From contig NC_042999.1 of NCBI RefSeq assembly GCF_006345805.1, forward strand, positions 63,984,001 through 64,048,000: a stretch of DNA of 64,000 bases, written 5' to 3'. How positions within the stretch are numbered: position 1 is the first letter of the stretch; each line of letters starts with the position of its first letter. The notes under the pieces are model-generated. The model made no database searches. It was not told the DNA's origin and saw nothing but the letters and a program-made list of their open reading frames with translations. The translations under genes and the position numbers were made by a program. This document shows, in pieces, positions 8,071 through 58,837 of this stretch. The stretch is from Octopus sinensis (Eukaryota).

Positions 8071-11000
8071 CACACACATATATACACACACAGTCCTTCA
8101 TGCATATATATATACACACACTGTCCTTCACGCATATATATGTATATACAAACACACCGTCCTTCACTGCTCAGGAAAGATAACTTTTTTACGAATTGAA
8201 TGCTTACAGTAATACGCTATATATGTGCATACATGCATGCATGCATCCATACATACATACATATCATAAGGATAGCATTTTGACAAGTGAAAATACACAT
8301 GCATACATAAATATATATATGTATATGTATGCATGTATGTATGCGCGCGCGTGTGCGTTTCAATGTATATACATGTATGAATTTATCTATATTTATTTAT
8401 GTATATATGCATGTATGATATATATAACATATATAAGCATATATATGAGTGTGTGTGTGTGTCTATTTACACACACTGACTCACACTCACACATACACAC
8501 GCACACACACACACGCATTATGTTCTATGCGCTTAGCCTTTAAGTATCAATCACATTCTACACAGAATACTCCTCCGGGTTCACTATGGAGAAACCCATT
8601 AAATACAAAAACAAAATGTAAACAAAAGGAATGATACTATCGCCGCCAAATAAAAAAAATAAATATACCCCTCCACCAAAAAGAAAAAGAAAAACCTCGA
8701 AGATTATTTATTTTATTGTAAATAATACCTTTGAATATTTTTTTGTTACGCATTGATTCACAGACAGACAAAACATAGTTATGTTCAGTATGAGACTCGG
8801 ACTAATTTTGTTATGCATTAGGTAATAGAAAAACAGACTGTAGTTTATATTCTACATAAGACCAGAACTTATTCTGTATGCATTTGACAAGAGAATGATT
8901 AAAAAGTAGTTTAAATTCAGTATGGTTCAACGATTAATTTGTTATTGCGTTAGACTTGGGAAAATTGGTCGTAGGGTATATTTTATATAAGACAACGATT
9001 AATTTGCTACTGCATTGAATTTTCGGCAAATTATAGCTCAGCTGCTTGAAAAATCTACAGCCTCAAAATCATATCTACAGCAACAATATGATTTGTATAT
9101 TTCAAAGTGTTTGGATCTGTTTCAAAATCATTTCCTGGTATGGTTATGTCTGACATCTCTCAAGCTAAACTGGTAACACACCGAGTTTAAGAGACAGAGG
9201 AAGTATGTTTCATTTGAAAACTGCAAGTGTTTAAATTTCGATGCCATGCTGGGTGTCAGCTTAAAACAGAAAAACGGCGAGTGAATCTAACAACATGCCA
9301 CTTCCAGTTCAGTTTCAATAGATTTCATTCGTTTTTGTTTTCTGTTTTGTTGCTTTTAATTTTTGCTTTATATCAACATGTATTTGTAAATAGAACGAAC
9401 CTTGTAATGTAGTGAGGAGCCATTGGCAAAATGAACCCCGACCTGATTTCAGTTCCGAATCGACACAATTTCACTATACCCATGCTGCTAATGCCACTGG
9501 AAAAACATGAATTTCATCATTTCCTACTGGCTCTTAATAGGAAGAAATACAAATATTAGAGTTTTTATAAAAAAAAAAAAAAGGTTAATAAATCACGCAA
9601 ATTTTTTGGCCGGAAAATTCTACTTTCGACAGGAAATTAAATTATAAAAAAAAGAAGATAAATATGTCCTTGTCTTTTAAAAAAACAAACATGCTCCTGG
9701 TGTGTATGGAATTTAGCAGAAAGAAAAAAAAAGGACAGAATGGAGAATCACCATTCATTCATTCATTCATTCATTCATTCATTCATTCATTTATTCATTC
9801 ATTTACTTAATTAGTGCGATATCTATACTATATGAAGTTAAGGCGTGTGGTCTAGTGGTTAGTGTTGGACTCATGGTATCGTGGTTTCAATTCCTAGACC
9901 AGGCGACCCGTTCTGCTCTTGAGCAAAACACTTCATTTCATGTTGCTCCAGTCCACTCAGCTGCCAAAAATGAATAATCCTGCGATGGACTCGCGTCTTG
10001 TCCTAGGGAAAAAAATATATATTCCACAGAAGCCGGAAACCGGACCTTATAAGTCCATAAGACACGGGAAGGATGCTTTATACTATAAGAAGGAAACCTC
10101 CTTACTAATTAAGTGTATGTAAATTTTATCAAAAGAAAGCAGTTTTTAAAATCAAAACTAACTACAAAATTCCAATAAATTCCAGTTTAAATTTTTTTTT
10201 TTATTATCAAAATGTATTTTTCATTCAGAAAACTAAATTCTATTCACTGCGACATGCAATCCTTAACATTTATATTCCTTTTCATCCGCAGTTTCCTTGC
10301 AACACACACGCGTGCACACCCACTACCCCCACACTCTTTTATTCCTCTCCCTCCCTCCCTCCTCTCTCTCTTGTTTTTTATCGCCTCTTTTCCTATTATT
10401 CTCTCTATTTCTTTATCCTTATAACTTTTTTCTCTTCGGTCTTTGTCGCTTCTCTATCTCACAGACTTAGTGAGATAGATATATATATATACAGACACAT
10501 TCCTCTATTCCGATTAGCCCTCATACATGTTTTATAAAATTGAGGAATATAAAGGCGTACACACAACACGTAAACTGTTTTTCAAAAGTTTCGTGTTGCC
10601 CTGTTTTCAAAAAAGATTTTCTAGTTTATGATTTTTGAAAATCTTTAAATATCGTGACTGTAGCAAGTAATTTTGGCAAAAATATTGTGACTGTAGCAAG
10701 TAATTTTGGCAAAAACTTTATAGAAATGTCCACTTTGCACGTCATATCCTACAAGAATTTATATCAGATTACTTGGGATCGATAAAGAACATATAATCAA
10801 TTAAATGCTTTCAGGCGATGTCCCAGCATGCCCACAGTCAAGTGGCTGAAGCCAGTAGCATAATTAAAGAATAACATTTTGAGAACGGCAAAAAACAAAA
10901 CAAAACAAAAACACAATAGAACCGACTACATTGGAATTTGAACTCATGCATCTATCTTTTCCGAGTAACTGCATTCCTGACTACCTATTAGCGCCCACCC

Positions 11001-15021: not shown

Positions 15022-15391
15022 GGAGGCGCAGTGGCTCAGTGGTTAGGGCAGCGGATTCGCGGTCGGAGGATCGCGGTTTCGATTCCCAGACCGGGTGTTG
15101 TGTGTGTTTATTGATCGAAAACACCTCAAAGCTCCACGAGGCTCCGGCAGGGATGGTGGCGACCCCTGTTGTATTCTTTCGCCCCAACTTTCTCTCACTA
15201 TTTCCTCCTGTTTCTTGTCCCCGACTTCCTACGCAACCGCTGAGCCTGGATGCGCATTCATCCATCCGTCGATGATCTCGGTGTCGGGGTTTGGCCTGCT
15301 TTCTCTTCTGCGGGTCTTACGAATAGCAAAGGACCACGTTTCGGACTTCTCCCAAGAGGACGAAGACCGCTTCGCTCAACAGCAACAGCAA
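15022..15391 (+). mobile_element. SINE family C
   Basis: tRNA-like head ggaggcgcagtggctcagtggttagggc...ggtttcgattccc and a (CAACAG)n tail; colinear with 38212-38598. Confidence 0.88.
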
Positions 15392-15399
15392 CACCAGCA

Positions 15400-16331
15400 G
15401 TGCTTAGGCCCTTATTGTTCTTAGTCTTCATAAATGACTTGCCCGACGACCTCACGCAACACACCCTTCTATTTGCCGACGATGTCAAACTGGTCGCTCC
15501 TCGCGGTGATATAGAGGATCTTCGTCGATGCCTCCACCAAATTTGGAGGTGGTCTAACGAATGGGACCTGTGTCTGAACGTGTCAAAGTGCTGTCATCTG
15601 CCTGTTGGCTCTCCTCCTGCAACTCAACTTGATTTCGAGCCGTGTCGTTTGCTGCTGGAGAGGACCGATCAGGTAAAGGACCTGGGTATCTTGGTGGATT
15701 CCTCCTTTTCACCTTCGGCCCAGTGCGTCCATGCTGCCAACAAAGCACGCGGAATTCTGTTCTTGATTCGACGGTCATTCGGAATGCTCACAGCAGCCAT
15801 ATTCCTACCACTCTATGTCACGCTGGTGAGACCCATATTGGAGTACGGGATTCAAGCCTCTTCTCCTTATCTCCTCAAAGACATACAGCATCTCGAAAGA
15901 GTCCAGAAGCTGGCTACCCGCATGGTTCATGGTCTCAAAAATTTGTCTTATGAAGAAAGGCTGAGGACGCTCGACCTTTATTCTCTAGAAAAACTCCGCC
16001 GCCGTGGTGATCTCATTCTCGCTCACAACATCATAAGCGGAAAGTGTAACCTCTCAATTGAGCGTCGGCTGCGGGGTCATTCTGAAAAGCTCTACCTGCG
16101 ACGATTTCATCTCAATCGAAGGAGAGGAGCTTTCTCCGTCCGGGTTGCGGATCCGTGGACAAGCTGCCAGACGAGATGGTGAAGATGCCGACGACCGCTT
16201 TGTTCAAAGTCTCCCTTGACCTCAAGTGGCCTGAACTCTTTACATGAACACCACCCTGTACTTAACTCCATGTCCCCCTACATGGCCTTGCTATTTACTT
16301 TTGAGCCAAATTAACTAACTAACTAACTAAC
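15400..16331 (+). mobile_element. 5'-truncated CR1/L2-group LINE (RT C-terminal half plus 3' UTR), apparently young
   Basis: Starts in the VL(G/R)PLLFLVFINDLP...LLFADDVKL RT motif and continues VKDLGILVD, RPILEYG and LERVQKLATR. It is open until a 1-nt deletion near 16158; the shifted frame reads KLPDEMVK...WPELFT*. It has a (TAAC)n tail and a candidate TSD caccagca (15392-15399, 16334-16341). Confidence 0.92.
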
Positions 16332-46072: not shown

Positions 46073-46206
46073 ACCACCACCACCACCACCACCACCACAT
46101 TCACCACCACCACCACCACCACCACCACCACCACCACCACCACGACAACCACCACCACCACCACCACACCACCACCACCACCACCACCACGACGACCACC
46201 ACCACG
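46035..46206. repeat. (AC)n plus (CAC)n microsatellite
   Basis: Read directly from the sequence. Confidence 0.95.
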
Positions 46207-47084
46207 TCCAGTTGAGGCATTACTCGAAGAAAATCCTGCATTATCAGTTGAAGAATTGGCAATAAAGCTTAGTTCAAACCATACAACTGTTCATGGTCAT
46301 CTTCAACAACTTGGAAAGGTTCCTAAACTTCGAAAATGGGTGCCTCATGAATTGTCTGAAAGCAACCGCAAATCCCGAGTTGACATCTGCACTTCTCTCC
46401 ATTCTCGCGAACTCATTTCACCCTTTTTGGATAGACTTGTGACTGGTGAGGAAAAGGGGATCTTCTATCGAAATGTTAAATGTCGTAAACAGTGGCTTGG
46501 TAAAAGGGAAAAAGCCCAACCACAACCGAGAAGGGAACTTCATGGGAAAAAGGTTCTTCTCCCTATCTGATAGAATTGCAAAGGAGTAATTCACTTTAAA
46601 TTGTTACCACCTAATGCAACAATCAATGCTCAAGTCTACTGTCAGTAATTAGAGCGTTTGAACCAAGCTTTGAAGAAAAAAAGACCCGCTTTAGTGAATC
46701 GAAAATGAGTGATGTTTCATCAGGACAAAGCGCGACCCCACACTGTAAAGATCCCATCACAGAAGATCGAAGAGCTTGGTTGGAAAAAAATTTCTCATCC
46801 ACCTTATTCTCCCAACCTTGCTCCTTCTGTTTCATAGTTTATAGAATCATTTGGGGGACATAACTTTCGCAAGCCAGGAGGAGGTCGAAACCGACATTTC
46901 AGAGTTCTTCGCTTTGAAAACAAAGGAGTTTTACATTGATGGGATTAAAAAGCTTGTAAATAGATGGAAGGAAGTCATAGATAATCAGGGAAAGTACATT
47001 GATGATTAAATTTCAATTAAATATAACATTTGATCACTTGTTTTCTTTATTCAAAATTCGGACAGAATTTATGGGATGAGCTGA
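46207..47084 (+). mobile_element. 5'-truncated decayed DD34D mariner
   Basis: Encodes KWVPHEL, FLDRLVTGEEK and FHQDKARPH...HPPYSPNLAPS with stops. The right TIR aaattcggacagaatttatgggatgagctga-TA is present; the 5' part is replaced by a (CAC)n tract. Confidence 0.88.
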
Positions 47085-54395: not shown

Positions 54396-54403
54396 CAAAT
54401 CTG

Positions 54404-55184
54404 GGATCTTTTCCTTTTGAACGGCAGTTTTCAACACAATTTCTAGTTAACTAAACACTTTTAAACTTCGTATACTGGTAGAATGTGTCAAAATAAAACA
54501 TTTTTTTCTCTTGGATTTCTTGAGAAAATTGTAATTTGTAAGTTTAACGTAGCTTAATTTTTCGAATTTTAACCAATCCTATGCCCTCTACTGAGCTAAA
54601 ATCATTTGCTGCGTCTAAAACAGATAACATCCTGTCACTAACCCTAGCCCTCACCCTAACCCTAAATTTTAGCCTTTCGTTTTTTTTTTCTTAATTGTTA
54701 AATTAATTTAAGGATAACAATTAAGAAAAAAAAAAACGAAAGGCTAAAACGAAAGCAATGGAAAATAATTTTGATTTAACAATTAAGAAAAAAATACGAA
54801 AGGATAAAACGAAAGCAAAAACTCAAAACAAAATCAAAACGAATAATTTTAGACACACGCGTAACAATTAAATTAATTTAACAATTAAGAAAAAAAAAAA
54901 CGAAAGGCTAAAATTTAGGGTTAGGGTTAGGGTGAGGGCTAGGGTTAGTGACAGGATGTTGTCTCAGTTTTATGCGCAGCAAATGATTTTAGCTCAATAG
55001 AGGGCATAGGATTGGTCAAAATTCGAAAAATTAAACTACGTTAAACTTACAAATTACAATTTTCTCCAGAAAGCCAAGAGAAAAAAATGTTTTATTTTGA
55101 CACATTCTACCAGTATACGAAGTTTAAAAGTGTTTAGTTAACTAGAAATTGTGTTGAAAACTGCCGTTCAAAAGGAAAAGATCC
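54404..55184. mobile_element. Foldback/MITE-like DNA element with ~310-bp TIRs containing telomere-like repeats
   Basis: Termini are GGATCTTTTCCTTTTGAACGGCAG... and ...CTGCCGTTCAAAAGGAAAAGATCC. The arms run ~54404-54710 and ~54869-55184 with about ten differences by eye. The 8-bp TSD caaatctg is at 54396-54403 and 55185-55192; an alternative reading gives a 6-bp aaatct TSD with GGGATC ends. CCCTAA-type units lie in the left arm and TTAGGG-type units in the right arm. Confidence 0.9.
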
Positions 55185-55820
55185 CAAATCTGGGACAAGC
55201 ACAACTAGAACACCGAATGTTTAGGTAAGGCATTGTATTAAACTCGATCTAGGAATATGTATTAGTAAAAGCGGCAACTTAAAAAATTATTAGAATACTT
55301 GTCTATATTCGAGTTTGATGAATTCTCTCCTAAAGATAATCTATTGTAGTATTTACTAGATTTTACCGTTGCTTAATATATTGGTTTCAAATTTTGGCAC
55401 AAGGCCAGCAATTTCGGGGCAGGGGCTAAGTCAATTAGATCGACCCTAGTGCTCAAGTGGCGCTTATTCTGTAGACCACGAAAAGATGAAAGGTGAAGCC
55501 GACACCGGCAGTATTTGAATTTAGACGAAATGCCGCTAAGCATTTTGCTTGGCGTGCGAACGATTTTGTCAGCTCGCTTAATGTATTTATAAAACAAATC
55601 ATTTAAATCTGACGATATTTTATTGCAGGGATAGGAAAATAATCATAAAATTATATCATAAATATTTAAACCATCTAAATGTAGTGTTTCGAATCAAGCA
55701 CATCATTCCTCATGGGAAAGGCAAACGTTACGGAAGTGGTGATGTGACACAAATGTAAATATTAAAAAAAAGAGAAAAAAAGAAATATTTGGAAAAAATA
55801 AAATTTGGAAACGTACTCTC

Positions 55821-56964
55821 TATTGTATGAAACACAGAAATACTAAAAAAGAAACATGGAAAAAAACTGCTCTTTTTCTTTCCCCATGAAGAGTGAGGCG
55901 CACAATACGAATCTCTCCGTATTTCAAATCACATTCACTGAGAAATGTGAATGAACGAAGATTTGGTAAATTTCTACAGCTACACCTGTTTGTCTTCGGG
56001 TTGGGCGATAGTTTACCTAAACAACAAGTAATTTTCGACGTTTTTGATAGTCAGATTCGTTCAAAACACACTAAAATACCACAGGAAAAACACATTTCCT
56101 CTTTAAAGGGTGTGTAGAATGGCTTGTAGTCCTTCATTCATTTCCTTTGGCACTGTATAATATATCCATGTATTATGGCTTTCTCTTATTATTTTGTTAG
56201 ATGCGATCGTGCGGCGTACAAGAGGAGACCTTGTCACCAAACTCCTTACGTACGGTCGATATATATATACCTACAGGTGTAATAGTAAACATTTACCTAA
56301 AATTGTTGATGTGTAATAGGACAAAGAACACTACACTGACAAAACGATCAGGTGTTTACTCCTGCATACGAGAGGACAATGTGGTGAACTCGGTTAATGA
56401 AGTTGTAAATAATAGCCATGGATTGGTCAATTCCAGGTTGTGAACAGTCAAAATTTATATAAATAGTTATGTTGCGGTTGAAGTGATGTAGCACCGGCAC
56501 AGACCCACGTGTTAAGTGTTTGAAATTAAGCTGACGTATATCCGATAAAATAAATAAATCTTCAGGGGTGTATCAACACCTTGCAAGCATTTAGATATGA
56601 TTTATTAACATGGTACAAGTCATATGAAGTTGGTCATGAATTACAGATATACACGTAGAGTCAACCTGATGAAAAAAATATAATGCAACAAGCTAGTAAC
56701 TTGATATCAAAAGCTTAGCACAGGGACTGGGTTAAACCCAGGAACATATAAAGGCATTGCTTCATGTCTGCCTTCATATACTGCATGTCTGAATGACCAT
56801 GTAGTTGTTATAGCAACTTGGTGAGAGTGGAGGCAATCATTCTGGGCTGATGTATGAAACACAGAAATACTAAAAAAGGAAAATGAAAAAAATCTGCTCT
56901 TTTTCTTTCCCCATGAAGAGTGAGGCGCACGATACAAATCTCTCCGTATTTCCAATCACATTCA
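55821..56964 (-). mobile_element. TRIM/LTR-like unit with ~117-bp terminal direct repeats and decayed Gypsy-like pol fragments
   Basis: Direct repeats at 55824-55939 and 56851-56966 differ by 7 substitutions in 116 nt, with no indels. The second starts TGATGT and both end ACATTCA. A 5-bp ctctc flanks the unit (55816-55820, 56965-56969). The minus strand encodes PVLHHFNRNITIYINFDCSQPGI (~56420-56495; RNase H-like spacing PVLxHF...DxSxxGI) and L*QLHGHSDMQYMKA...YVPGFN (~56735-56850; integrase H2C2-like). No clear PBS or PPT was seen. Confidence 0.45.
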
Positions 56965-57314
56965 CTCTCCAATAAACCGCGCGATCTTACTTCCAAAATA
57001 ACTATAGAACAGAGTTAAGCTTTCATCGAACCAAGCCTCGTGAATCGGTTATGATCTCCGGTTTTATCTATTCATTTCGCTTCATTTATGTCACTAATAC
57101 ATTTAAAGTGATAAATTTATGTAAAAAATTATAACTAATGTTTCTGTTCCCGATAATTTCGATAGTAAATGTAATGTCACAAAGTACGAGCGAACAGAAA
57201 AGGCTAACTATTTAAATTAAAAAAGCGTCCTTCCGTGGCGTTTGTCTTTAAACGTTTTCCATACGTTTAGAAACTGTAACCAGTCAGTTGCGTTCTGCTG
57301 TCTGGTGTTGCCAC

Positions 57315-57378
57315 GTAAACTTATTTATCGTTCACTTTGTTATTTTATTTCAAGTGTTTAATATCGTTTGCTTTTTAG
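57315..57378 (+). other. Possible short 5'-UTR intron of the EB1-like gene
   Basis: 64-nt GTAAAC...TTTGCTTTTTAG segment with a pyrimidine-rich acceptor, 77 nt upstream of the ATG. Motif evidence only. Confidence 0.22.
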
Positions 57379-57455
57379 GATACAATATCCATCAATATAT
57401 TCATATACGTTGATATTCTTGAAATAATAAGCCTGGACTTCAGAATACAACAGAT

Positions 57456-58781
57456 ATGAGTGCAAATAATTGTTTCAAAATTGAACATGTCAGTAAAGAA
57501 GATTTGATTATTTGGTTCCGTCGTACAGTTTCTCCGAAGTTCAATGCAATCGAAGACCTATGGTCTGGATCCGATCTTTGCTTAGGAATGGAAATACTTT
57601 TCCCTGGCTCTGTTGATTTACGGAATATAAAGATTGACAGACTTACAGAAAACGATCGGCGCCATAATTTTACTTATCTTCAAACAGTTTTTGAGAAAAA
57701 TGGTGTTGAAAAAGAGATTCCCGTTGAAGATATTTTAAAAGGAAATTTTAAGAGTTGTTATCAGTTTGGGCAATGGTTCCGATCATTCTTTCTGGAGAAT
57801 TATCAAGGCCAACCTTATGATATAAACCAAATTAGAGCCTCATGCAAAAAGAAAAAGTTCAAGAAAAGGGCTACAAAATCTCAAAATAGAGAACATTCTC
57901 AAGATACAAAGGACTTCTCTGAAACGAATGCTCAGTCACCAGTCGACAAAAACAAAGAAGAAACCTCGAAATCAGGGAATCACCGTGATAATGAATCTGT
58001 TCATAAAAACGCTATGATTCAACCGCCGAAGATATTCGTCAAATCAAAGAATTTGGCTGTGAATAATACGTTTCGGGTTCAAAATGTAAGCAAAGAAGAT
58101 TTAATTATTTGGTTCCGCAGAGCAATCGCTCCGAAATTGTCCAGCATTGGTGAATTAGGAACCGGTGTCGATTTTTGTGTTGGTATAGGAATATTATTTC
58201 CTGGCTCAATTGCTTTTGAAGATATAAAATTCAGTCCTGTTACCGACACGGATAAACGCCAGAATTTCAAATGTCTTCAAGCTGCTTTTAAAAATTTTGC
58301 AGTCGATAAGGATATTCCAGTGGAGAACTTAATAAAAGGAACCTTTAAAGGGAATTTCTTCTTCGGAAAATGGTTTAAAGCATTTTTTCACGCAAACTAT
58401 AAAGGTCAAACGTATGATTTGTGTCGACTGCGTGGTTTGGGTAATAATAATTACAACAAAAACAACAGAAAGAGTCATTGTTATGAAAAATGTGAAAGGG
58501 AGAATTCCGGTCAAGGTGACGCTTGCAGGAGAAATAGTGAATCTGGTGTTGAAGCGATGGCAAAACATGTTGAGTGCCACCGTAGATGTAAGTTGATATT
58601 AGAAAAGGAATCCCAAACAGATTTGGACTATGAAGCTGATATGAGCGACAAAGACAGGGAGTCGGATAATAACAAGATAGAGAAACTTTCTGAAAAACTG
58701 CAACGGATCGAAACTATTTGCAGGAATAATCCAGACGAAGGAATATGTCTAATGATATGGAAAGTACTCGCAGAGGCTTGA
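57456..58781 (+). CDS. MAPRE1-like: Intronless EB1/MAPRE-family protein with two tandem EB-type CH domains (aa ~4-127 and ~203-326) and a degenerate C-terminal EBH domain
   Basis: The ORF is an uninterrupted 441 aa, with an in-frame upstream stop at 57420-57422. Both repeats align to the EB1 CH domain: ILFPGSVDLRNIK and ILFPGSIAFEDIKF vs EB1 MLFPGSIALKKVKF; NFKCLQAAFK vs NFKILQAGFK; VDKDIPVENLIKGTF vs VDKIIPVDKLVKGKF; WFKAFFHANYKGQTYD vs WFKKFFDANYDGKDYD. The C-terminal EKLQRIETICRNN...IWKVL aligns to EB1 GKLRNIELICQEN...IVDIL. EB1 sequence is quoted from memory. Confidence 0.92.
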   Translation: MSANNCFKIEHVSKEDLIIWFRRTVSPKFNAIEDLWSGSDLCLGMEILFPGSVDLRNIKIDRLTENDRRHNFTYLQTVFEKNGVEKEIPVEDILKGNFKSCYQFGQWFRSFFLENYQGQPYDINQIRASCKKKKFKKRATKSQNREHSQDTKDFSETNAQSPVDKNKEETSKSGNHRDNESVHKNAMIQPPKIFVKSKNLAVNNTFRVQNVSKEDLIIWFRRAIAPKLSSIGELGTGVDFCVGIGILFPGSIAFEDIKFSPVTDTDKRQNFKCLQAAFKNFAVDKDIPVENLIKGTFKGNFFFGKWFKAFFHANYKGQTYDLCRLRGLGNNNYNKNNRKSHCYEKCERENSGQGDACRRNSESGVEAMAKHVECHRRCKLILEKESQTDLDYEADMSDKDRESDNNKIEKLSEKLQRIETICRNNPDEGICLMIWKVLAEA

Positions 58782-58825: not shown

Positions 58826-58837
58826 AATAAAAAAAAA
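58826..58837 (+). promoter_or_regulatory. Candidate polyadenylation signal / A-tract after the EB1-like gene
   Basis: AATAAA running into an A-tract (gAATAAaaaaaaagtt), 45 nt after the stop codon. Confidence 0.35.

Follow-up and report, generated by a model that had tools for sequence, protein, structure and literature searches.

An intronless coleoid gene of the RP/EB family encodes two EB-type CH domains in one chain and is predicted to bind the microtubule lattice

A stretch of 64,000 nucleotides from Octopus sinensis (contig NC_042999.1, positions 63,984,001 to 64,048,000; hereafter the window) carries an intronless gene, here termed T1, in which a single open reading frame (ORF) encodes two calponin-homology (CH) domains of the type found in the microtubule-binding RP/EB family. 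As judged from its sequence and its conservation, T1 is an old, functional coleoid gene of this family. We assign a probability of about 0.6 to the reading that T1 is a coleoid-specific RP/EB member, derived from a retrocopy, in which the CH domain was duplicated in cis to give a bivalent single-chain binder of the microtubule lattice and not a plus-end hub. The residue changes described below suggest that the protein probably no longer serves as a classical tip-tracking hub.

The Pfam CH profile (PF00307) matches the T1 protein at two stretches, and a sequence search of the Protein Data Bank (PDB) returned chains of the EB family only (EB1, EB3, Bim1 and Mal3), with matches that cover both halves of the protein (amino acids (aa) 9-122 and 206-324) at E-values down to 3e-29. 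In an AlphaFold2 model, for which 16 family sequences were used, both CH domains fold with confidence (aa 4-128 and 203-327; predicted local distance difference test score (pLDDT) ~80-90); they are joined by a linker with pLDDT <50 across aa 133-199 and followed by a further disordered stretch (aa 329-402) and a C-terminal helix-loop-helix (aa 401-424 and 429-440). The best PDB matches of this model in Foldseek were the CH domains of EB3 and EB1, with a template modelling (TM) score on target of 0.86-0.96, and no non-EB structure in the PDB scored above a TM of 0.3 on query. These results agree with an earlier note, made from the letters of the window alone, which had proposed one intronless ORF with two EB-type CH domains. 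When the halves of T1 were compared by BLASTP, 62 of 128 residues were identical (48%; 74% positives, E=5e-50) and no gaps were needed, matching the 62 identities that had been counted by hand; the repeat offset from CH1 to CH2 is 597 nt (57454 versus 58051), which is the spacing of 199 codons previously given. The basic KKKKFKKR linker motif was also read where it had been described. The domain positions were right for both copies, the envelopes of the hidden Markov model (HMM) being 3 nt longer at the 3' end (57839 and 58436). VSKEDLIIWFRR is identical in CH1 and CH2; recent gene conversion is an unlikely reason for this identity, as 5 of the 12 codons differ synonymously. Downstream of CH2, the motif EN[SI]GQGDA of the disordered middle region is conserved from Octopus to Sepia.

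The tandem architecture is conserved across coleoids. The T1 protein of the O. vulgaris chromosome assembly is identical to that of O. sinensis, the O. bimaculoides protein is 97% identical (XP_052822784.1, 'uncharacterized protein LOC128247397'), a copy from another Octopus species (P0170) falls in the same 90%-identity cluster, and the protein of Argonauta hians (428 aa) is 73% identical; in O. sinensis and in each of these the gene has a single exon. An intact tandem-CH protein of 488 aa (P0171) is 36-39% identical to octopus T1, and because its source run, ERR3431203, also holds the exact Sepia (Acanthosepion) pharaonis protein CAE1252686.1, T1 is present in a cuttlefish. Presence in cuttlefish and octopods makes the tandem architecture older than the octopod-decapodiform split. 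A further phmmer match, P0017 from the decapodiform-like ENA assembly ERZ21867824, is 38% identical to T1 and collinear with it through both CH domains, and is 72% identical to Sepia T1. A profile search for additional orthologues found none beyond octopods, Sepia and ERZ21867824. Thus, two of the dangers that the earlier note had named, an assembly artefact and a gene lacking orthologues, do not apply: the tandem was recovered from six or more assemblies or read sets that are independent of one another, and CH1 and CH2 are just ~48% identical, which makes a collapse or duplication error in assembly impossible.

Both heads of T1 are under strong purifying selection. The ratio of nonsynonymous to synonymous substitution (dN/dS) was calculated by the Nei-Gojobori method between Octopus and Argonauta, at a dS of 1.1-1.5 (saturating, at 1.1-1.4, for the CH domains), and is 0.075 for CH1, 0.035 for CH2 (0.04-0.09 for the CH domains overall) and 0.10 for the whole gene, for which the full range of estimates is 0.10-0.18. 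The C-terminal part is also constrained (~0.23-0.3), and the linker is the fastest-evolving part of the protein (0.59 between two Octopus species). These values led us to reject a pseudogene or chance ORF.

The position that corresponds to Q102 of EB1 is glutamine in 24 of 24 canonical EBs and lysine in all 16 CH domains of T1 and of T2, a second tandem-CH gene described below. Lysine is found there in both CH domains of every T1 orthologue (aa 99 in CH1 and aa 298 in CH2 of Octopus T1), and glutamine is kept only by the one paralogue clade that also retains the EBH domain. Using the KFQDNFEF / KMQDNLEF motif, this residue was mapped to Mal3 Q89, which contacts helix H3 of beta-tubulin; this glutamine is reported to be conserved in EB1 proteins across eukaryotes (PMC10199041). 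Mal3 Q89A binds with higher affinity and along the whole microtubule, Q89R in vivo shows enhanced lattice binding and loses end tracking, and Q89E is strongly impaired in tracking (PMC3368265). EB1 K89 is retained in both T1 heads.

The Pfam EB1/EBH profile (PF03271) gave no match in Octopus T1, whose C-terminus also failed to match when searched alone at E<=1, and Argonauta T1 reached 13.4 bits (E=0.1) where the cut-off is 27; of the Pfam result anticipated by the earlier note, the two CH matches were found and the weak EBH match was absent from Octopus. Alignment by hand and with MAFFT places EKLQRIETICRNN-PDEG-ICLMIWKVLAEA of T1 against GKLRNIELICQEN...VLQRIVDILYAT of EB1, with the core KLQRIETIC opposite KLRNIELIC, and just this KLxxIExxC hairpin survives. 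Judged by this alignment, the hairpin is a homologous remnant of the EBH bundle core. The EB1 residues F216, Y217, F218 and Y247, which we take to be the aromatics of the SxIP-binding pocket (the list reportedly goes back to Honnappa et al. 2009), are not kept: FYF reads KLS in Octopus T1 and TVT in Argonauta T1, and Y247 is replaced by alanine. Octopus T1 ends in ...KVLAEA and Argonauta T1 in ...KILADD, both without an EEY tail; Sepia T1 has an acidic tail (net charge -21) that contains an internal EEVEEY followed by 18 further residues. With lysine at Q102 in both heads, the SxIP aromatics lost and, in octopods, no EEY tail, T1 is expected to be a lattice binder and not a hub of plus-end tracking proteins (+TIPs).

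According to the model that we favour, the family would go back to a retrocopy of the canonical EB gene, which has several exons, and a later duplication of the CH domain in cis would predate the octopod-decapodiform divergence. The T1 chain would bind microtubules bivalently through its two heads, the flexible 74-aa linker being long enough, by our own estimate, to reach a neighbouring EB site ~5-8 nm away. T1 would prefer the lattice over the GTP cap, with a stabilising or bundling role expected, and neither SxIP nor CAP-Gly partners would be recruited. Through the KLxxIExxC hairpin that it retains, T1 may still form a pair of chains with four heads in all.

The second tandem-CH EB-like gene, T2 (Table 1), has PDB matches to EB proteins only and orthologues in Argonauta (GAB1598528.1) and in one ENA assembly. 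It resembles T1 in combining a pair of EB-type CH domains within an intronless ORF, in carrying lysine at Q102 and in being found only in cephalopods, and differs from T1 in belonging to another clade, in an 86-aa N-terminal extension and in the lack of any EBH remnant, since the protein ends straight after CH2 with neither a coiled coil nor an EBH domain. T2, with no residues beyond its pair of EB-type heads, shows that a single-chain, two-headed EB-like protein without a dimerisation module exists; going by its encoded protein, no other natural case, T1 included, presents two heads in cis without such a module as cleanly. The two T2 CH domains form a clade of their own together with a single-CH relative at G000:C2:185.69 Mb (support 100/99), so the T2 tandem probably arose separately from that of T1.

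T1 and T2 stand among a larger set of divergent copies. A search of the O. sinensis genome with CH2 gave 26 matches, at least nine of them intact single open frames of 300-761 aa, and orthologues of these intronless EB-like paralogues occur in O. bimaculoides, O. vulgaris, Argonauta and Sepia. At NCBI the paralogues are named 'RP/EB family member 1-like/2/3' or 'interaptin-like'. A single lineage (a 313-aa ORF on L032, and its orthologues) keeps a Pfam-detectable EBH domain together with the glutamine at Q102. The canonical EB gene of this genome, matched exon by exon, has at least four exons within C10:55039219-55053169 (~14 kb), whereas the divergent paralogues are, without exception, uninterrupted open frames. 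Because the paralogues are intronless while the canonical gene has introns, the family was most likely founded by a retrocopy of the canonical multi-exon gene, with DNA-level duplication afterwards. A local tandem gene array around T1 was rejected, as tblastn of all paralogues against the window matched T1 only. Elsewhere in the genome, C7:31013634-31020526 (L018-L025) is a tandem repeat of more than eight units of ~1.03 kb, with half of an EB-like CH domain, the N-terminal one, in every unit (FKVKDMSCQQLITWYREHLKPDMTD.TELSTGLHNCIGMDKLFPGVINMNNVK); from this organisation, the array is a gene fragment amplified in the manner of a satellite. A figure of the giant squid Hox cluster (PMC6962438) includes a MAPRE1-like gene among the non-Hox genes, which may be one of the dispersed intronless EB-like copies.

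The history of the two heads was examined in maximum-likelihood trees of ~62 CH domains (125 columns, two runs), with approximately unbiased (AU) tests of alternative groupings. The 24 canonical EBs separate from all divergent cephalopod sequences with support of 93-96, and the divergent sequences split into the T2 clade (100/99) and a main clade (99/93-95), at the base of which all T1 domains are found. Since both CH domains of T1 lie within a cephalopod clade that excludes the canonical EBs, the duplication is later than the split from the canonical gene, as the earlier note had argued. The ground given there was a set of derived states (SK..L..WFR and ELGTG.DFC.G) thought to be private to T1, which proved to be common to at least six single-CH octopus paralogues; being family-wide, they do not prove that the nearest relative of CH1 is CH2 and vice versa. 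In the free tree, decapodiform CH1 and CH2 pair weakly (94/60), and octopod CH1 and CH2 branch successively below the single-CH paralogues along internal branches 0.03-0.12 long; basal branches this short leave the order of CH1 and CH2 unsettled. AU tests gave p = 0.14 when all ten T1 domains were forced into one clade, p = 0.16 for the six octopod T1 domains, p = 0.10 for the five CH1 domains and p = 0.23 for the five CH2 domains. The trees bear directly on whether CH1 and CH2 were instead joined by fusion of two different EB-like paralogues, through gene fusion or exon capture, and not by internal duplication. A fusion would fit with the two heads not being sisters in the free trees, and with their similarity to each other (48%) being no higher than that of each to single-CH paralogues (44-53%). 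However, neither head nests within any well-supported single-CH paralogue clade, so that a grouping of CH1 and CH2 with different paralogues, which had been raised as a possible outcome, was not found and the trees leave a fusion of extant paralogues unsupported. Moreover, the two heads share a basal position in the main clade, the one-clade constraint is cheap (4.9 log-likelihood units for all T1 domains, 0.8 for the octopod pair), and the placement of the two T2 domains in one clade (100/99) means that internal duplication did occur in the family. We regard a fusion as quite unlikely.

Two further alternatives concern what the protein does. T1 could still be a plus-end tracker that dimerises through its EBH-core hairpin to form a four-headed, high-avidity +TIP. 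The hairpin EKLQRIETICRNN...ICLMIWKVL does align with the EB1 bundle core, with a/d-like spacing of I, L, L, I and C, in a region constrained at a dN/dS of about 0.3, but its pre-loop helix is just ~24 residues long and the region scores nothing against Pfam EB1. Likewise, a single CH domain suffices for tip tracking, which dimerisation enhances (PMC2686402), and K89 is kept in both heads, whereas Q102 is lysine in both and Mal3 Q89A/E/R altered or abolished end tracking. With the partner-binding aromatics and the EEY tail lost, no hub role would be possible, and we consider a four-headed +TIP unlikely. Very unlikely, in our judgement, is a main role away from cytoplasmic microtubules, either as a nuclear or spindle protein by virtue of KKKKFKKR or with one CH domain re-purposed for another ligand. 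The basic patch, which resembles a classical monopartite nuclear localisation signal (NLS), could act as such a signal or make electrostatic contact with the microtubule; it is conserved as KKKKYKKK in Argonauta T1, but lies elsewhere in Sepia T1. NLS-bearing nuclear EB1 variants are reported from Plasmodium, Toxoplasma and Arabidopsis (PMC10199041), and a re-purposed head would agree with the acidic character of octopod CH1 (net charge -2, isoelectric point (pI) 5.7) and with the acidic residues at K59/K60 of CH2. Against this, both CH domains are clearly EB-type with K89 retained, and the model has no non-EB structural match above the TM threshold given above.

Several observations weigh against our own reading of T1 as a retrocopy-derived, cis-duplicated, bivalent lattice binder. 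The outcome for Mal3 Q89E means that the effect of a substitution at this position depends on the residue, and this applies to lysine. Octopod CH2 has E and D at the equivalents of K59 and K60, which together with the acidic CH1 suggests that the heads may not be equivalent, and one of them may bind weakly or bind something else. The AU tests rejected no alternative grouping, and the sisterhood of CH1 and CH2 that the earlier note had expected was neither recovered nor rejected (p = 0.14-0.16). The retrocopy step relies solely on the absence of introns; after a time that reaches back beyond the octopod-decapodiform split, neither a poly(A) tract nor target-site duplications would be expected to remain. 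The T1 copy in ERZ21867824 (L039 ~8850-8900, contig ctg112704l) has two frameshifts and a stop within CH2, after which ~170 codons are still open; this could be an assembly error or a recent loss in that species, and the intact Sepia P0171 shows the expected reading of the region. Finally, when transcripts were sought among Logan contigs, the matches were genomic: L048-L050, each of which starts with a (TG)n repeat, follow the genome collinearly and are therefore genomic contigs, and L040 is without a clear poly(A) tail.

A short motif suggests another means by which members of the family may pair. Many paralogues, and also Sepia T1, carry the recurrent sequence [VL]Dxx[ST]QT[DE] in the disordered segment ahead of the coiled coil, for example as LVDTLSQTDE (aa 209-218 of the L032 ORF), TVDGLTQTDK (Argonauta P0021) and VDVASQTD (Sepia T1). 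Octopus T1 has LEKESQTD, with E and not D at -4, and the motif is absent from Argonauta T1 and from all sampled canonical EBs. It agrees with the recognition pattern of LC8/DYNLL, which comprises 8 residues in a disordered region around a TQT anchor, with Q at 0, T or S at -1, T at +1 and often D at -4 (PMC6607443). The LC8-type motif may be an alternative dimerisation route. A wider reading, which we put forward tentatively and hold to be doubtful as a whole, is that one EB retrocopy gave rise to a coleoid family of lattice-binding, EB-like microtubule-associated proteins in which the coiled coil/EBH dimer was replaced several times, in T1 and T2 by CH duplication (probably separately) and in others maybe via LC8, with the invariant nucleotide-sensing glutamine changed to lysine throughout; under this scenario, T1 would represent a bivalent EB that occurs in nature as one chain and reads the lattice, not the GTP cap.

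Compared with canonical RP/EB proteins (human EB1/MAPRE1 and EB3, S. pombe Mal3 and S. cerevisiae Bim1), T1 shares the EB-type CH fold (37-45% identity, TM 0.86-0.96), the conserved K89, a basic linker after the CH domain and the recognisable KLxxIExxC core near the C-terminus. It differs in having two CH domains per chain where those proteins have one, in its intronless gene, in a long coiled coil that has shrunk to ~24 residues with Pfam EB1 undetected, in the loss of the FYF and Tyr247 aromatics and (in octopods) of the EEY/F tail, and in lysine at Q102 of both heads. Two CH folds per chain are also found in actin-binding domains such as those of alpha-actinin, spectrin and fimbrin, which combine a type-1 and a type-2 CH domain, joined by a short linker and packed together. 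The CH domains of T1, in contrast, are both EB-type and separated by a disordered 74-aa linker (pLDDT <40), and Foldseek gave actin-binding domains a poor TM on query of 0.18-0.22 at a root-mean-square deviation of ~15 A. Closer in design are artificial proteins; Slep & Vale 2007 reportedly engineered dimeric or tandem EB heads. Like T1, EB3-N-LZ and EB1N-FKBP (Komarova et al. 2009, PMC2686402) hold two EB CH domains together without the native partner-binding C-terminus; they consist of identical wild-type heads plus a dimeriser, whereas the T1 heads are natural, 48% identical, connected by the 74-aa linker and changed to lysine at Q102. Dimerised EB heads showed raised affinity for the tip, and catastrophes were still significantly inhibited by an artificial EB3 dimer from which the partner-binding C-terminal domain was missing (PMC2686402). 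Precedents for EB CH proteins that decorate the whole lattice, as predicted for T1, are Mal3 Q89A/Q89R and Plasmodium EB1 (PMC3368265, PMC10199041). Mal3 Q89R carries a basic residue at the equivalent position, as T1 does; the Mal3 variants are laboratory mutants, and Plasmodium EB1 differs in keeping the glutamine and using its linker.

A phmmer search against 1.84 billion representative proteins returned just 7 proteins at E<=1e-30, all of the cephalopod family. No tandem EB-type CH protein from outside cephalopods was found among the 150 best matches, in which the other proteins matching at two stretches were either a single CH domain with EBH or gene models with a retained intron or a partial CH repeat (P0020, P0105). 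The earlier note knew of no natural tandem-CH EB protein. In the full-text literature we likewise found no description of T1, its family or any natural tandem-CH EB, the sole mention being the MAPRE1-like gene of the giant squid; the gene itself, on the other hand, is already deposited or predicted in several coleoid genomes, under entries named as uncharacterised or CH-domain proteins only (e.g. XP_052822784.1; UniRef A0A0L8I386). These proteins touch on a long-running question, whether the two-headedness of EB proteins provides mere avidity or is needed for their activity on microtubule dynamics; so far, all work on it has used artificial dimers and monomers (PMC2686402). In T1 and T2, selection has preserved EB relatives that naturally carry two heads in a single chain, T1 is older than the octopod-decapodiform divergence, and both of its heads are substituted at the residue that sets end-versus-lattice preference; the two proteins are thus ready constructs for testing avidity, linker reach and the reading of nucleotide state. 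The analysis also exposes a coleoid-specific expansion of EB-like proteins, with at least nine intact intronless paralogues, for whose roles giant axons, the large nervous system and sperm are candidate places.

Table 1. Features of T1 in window coordinates, followed by the genomic locations of T2 and of intact paralogues
Feature	Position	Strand	Details
Intronless coding sequence (CDS) of the tandem-CH EB-like protein T1	57456..58781	+	single ATG-to-stop ORF, 441 aa + stop
CH1, EB-type calponin-homology domain	57465..57839	+	aa 4-128; HMM envelope, PDB EB3/EB1 matches, pLDDT ~80-90
Inter-CH linker, disordered, basic	57840..58061	+	aa 129-202 (74 aa); net charge +9, pI 9.95
KKKKFKKR basic patch	57846..57869	+	aa 131-138, direct sequence reading
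CH2, EB-type calponin-homology domain	58062..58436	+	aa 203-327; HMM envelope; top PDB matches EB1, E=3e-29
Disordered middle region with ENSGQGDA motif	58437..58655	+	aa 328-400; pLDDT <50 for aa 329-402
SQTD, TQT-like short linear motif (ESQTD)	58611..58622	+	aa 386-389, disordered stretch
C-terminal helical hairpin, EBH four-helix-bundle core remnant (by alignment)	58656..58778	+	aa 401-441; AlphaFold2 helices 401-424 and 429-440
AATAAA, candidate polyadenylation signal	58826..58831	+	45 nt past stop codon; consensus match alone
Conserved upstream block, putative promoter and 5' untranslated region	56966..57455	+	collinear blastn alignment across species
T2, second tandem-CH EB-like gene	G000:C5:49450868-49452154 (L027 ORF 2347-3633, reverse strand)	-	428 aa, intronless; CH aa 87-205 and 303-425
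Intact intronless EB-like paralogues (L028-L034)	C19:38.13 Mb, C11627, C3:170.347 and 170.386 Mb (39 kb apart), C13:9.73 Mb, C5:112.39 Mb, C2:185.69 Mb		

T1 is the sole long non-repeat ORF of the window, the remainder of which is microsatellite-rich with transposon fragments. Upstream of the gene, blastn alignments with O. bimaculoides (L038) and with another Octopus species (L048-L050) start at 56958-56966 and continue into the CDS. A direct repeat of 116 nt (94% identical) is present at 55824-55939 and 56851-56966, with a spacing of 1027 nt, and its end coincides exactly with the start of this cross-species conservation. Farther upstream, an inverted repeat at 54396-55192, with 229-nt arms that are 96% complementary and an inner part of telomere-like CCCTAA/TTAGGG-type repeats, forms a foldback-like element ~2.3 kb from T1. 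The window further contains a reverse-transcriptase fragment (RVT_1, 30 bits) at 15244-16182 (+) and a mariner-type transposase fragment (Transposase_1, 26 bits) at 46166-46570 (+), and long TA/CA-rich microsatellite blocks at 19.1-20.4, 26.4-27.0, 35.4-36.4 and 48.3-48.8 kb give rise to spurious 'YIYI' ORFs.

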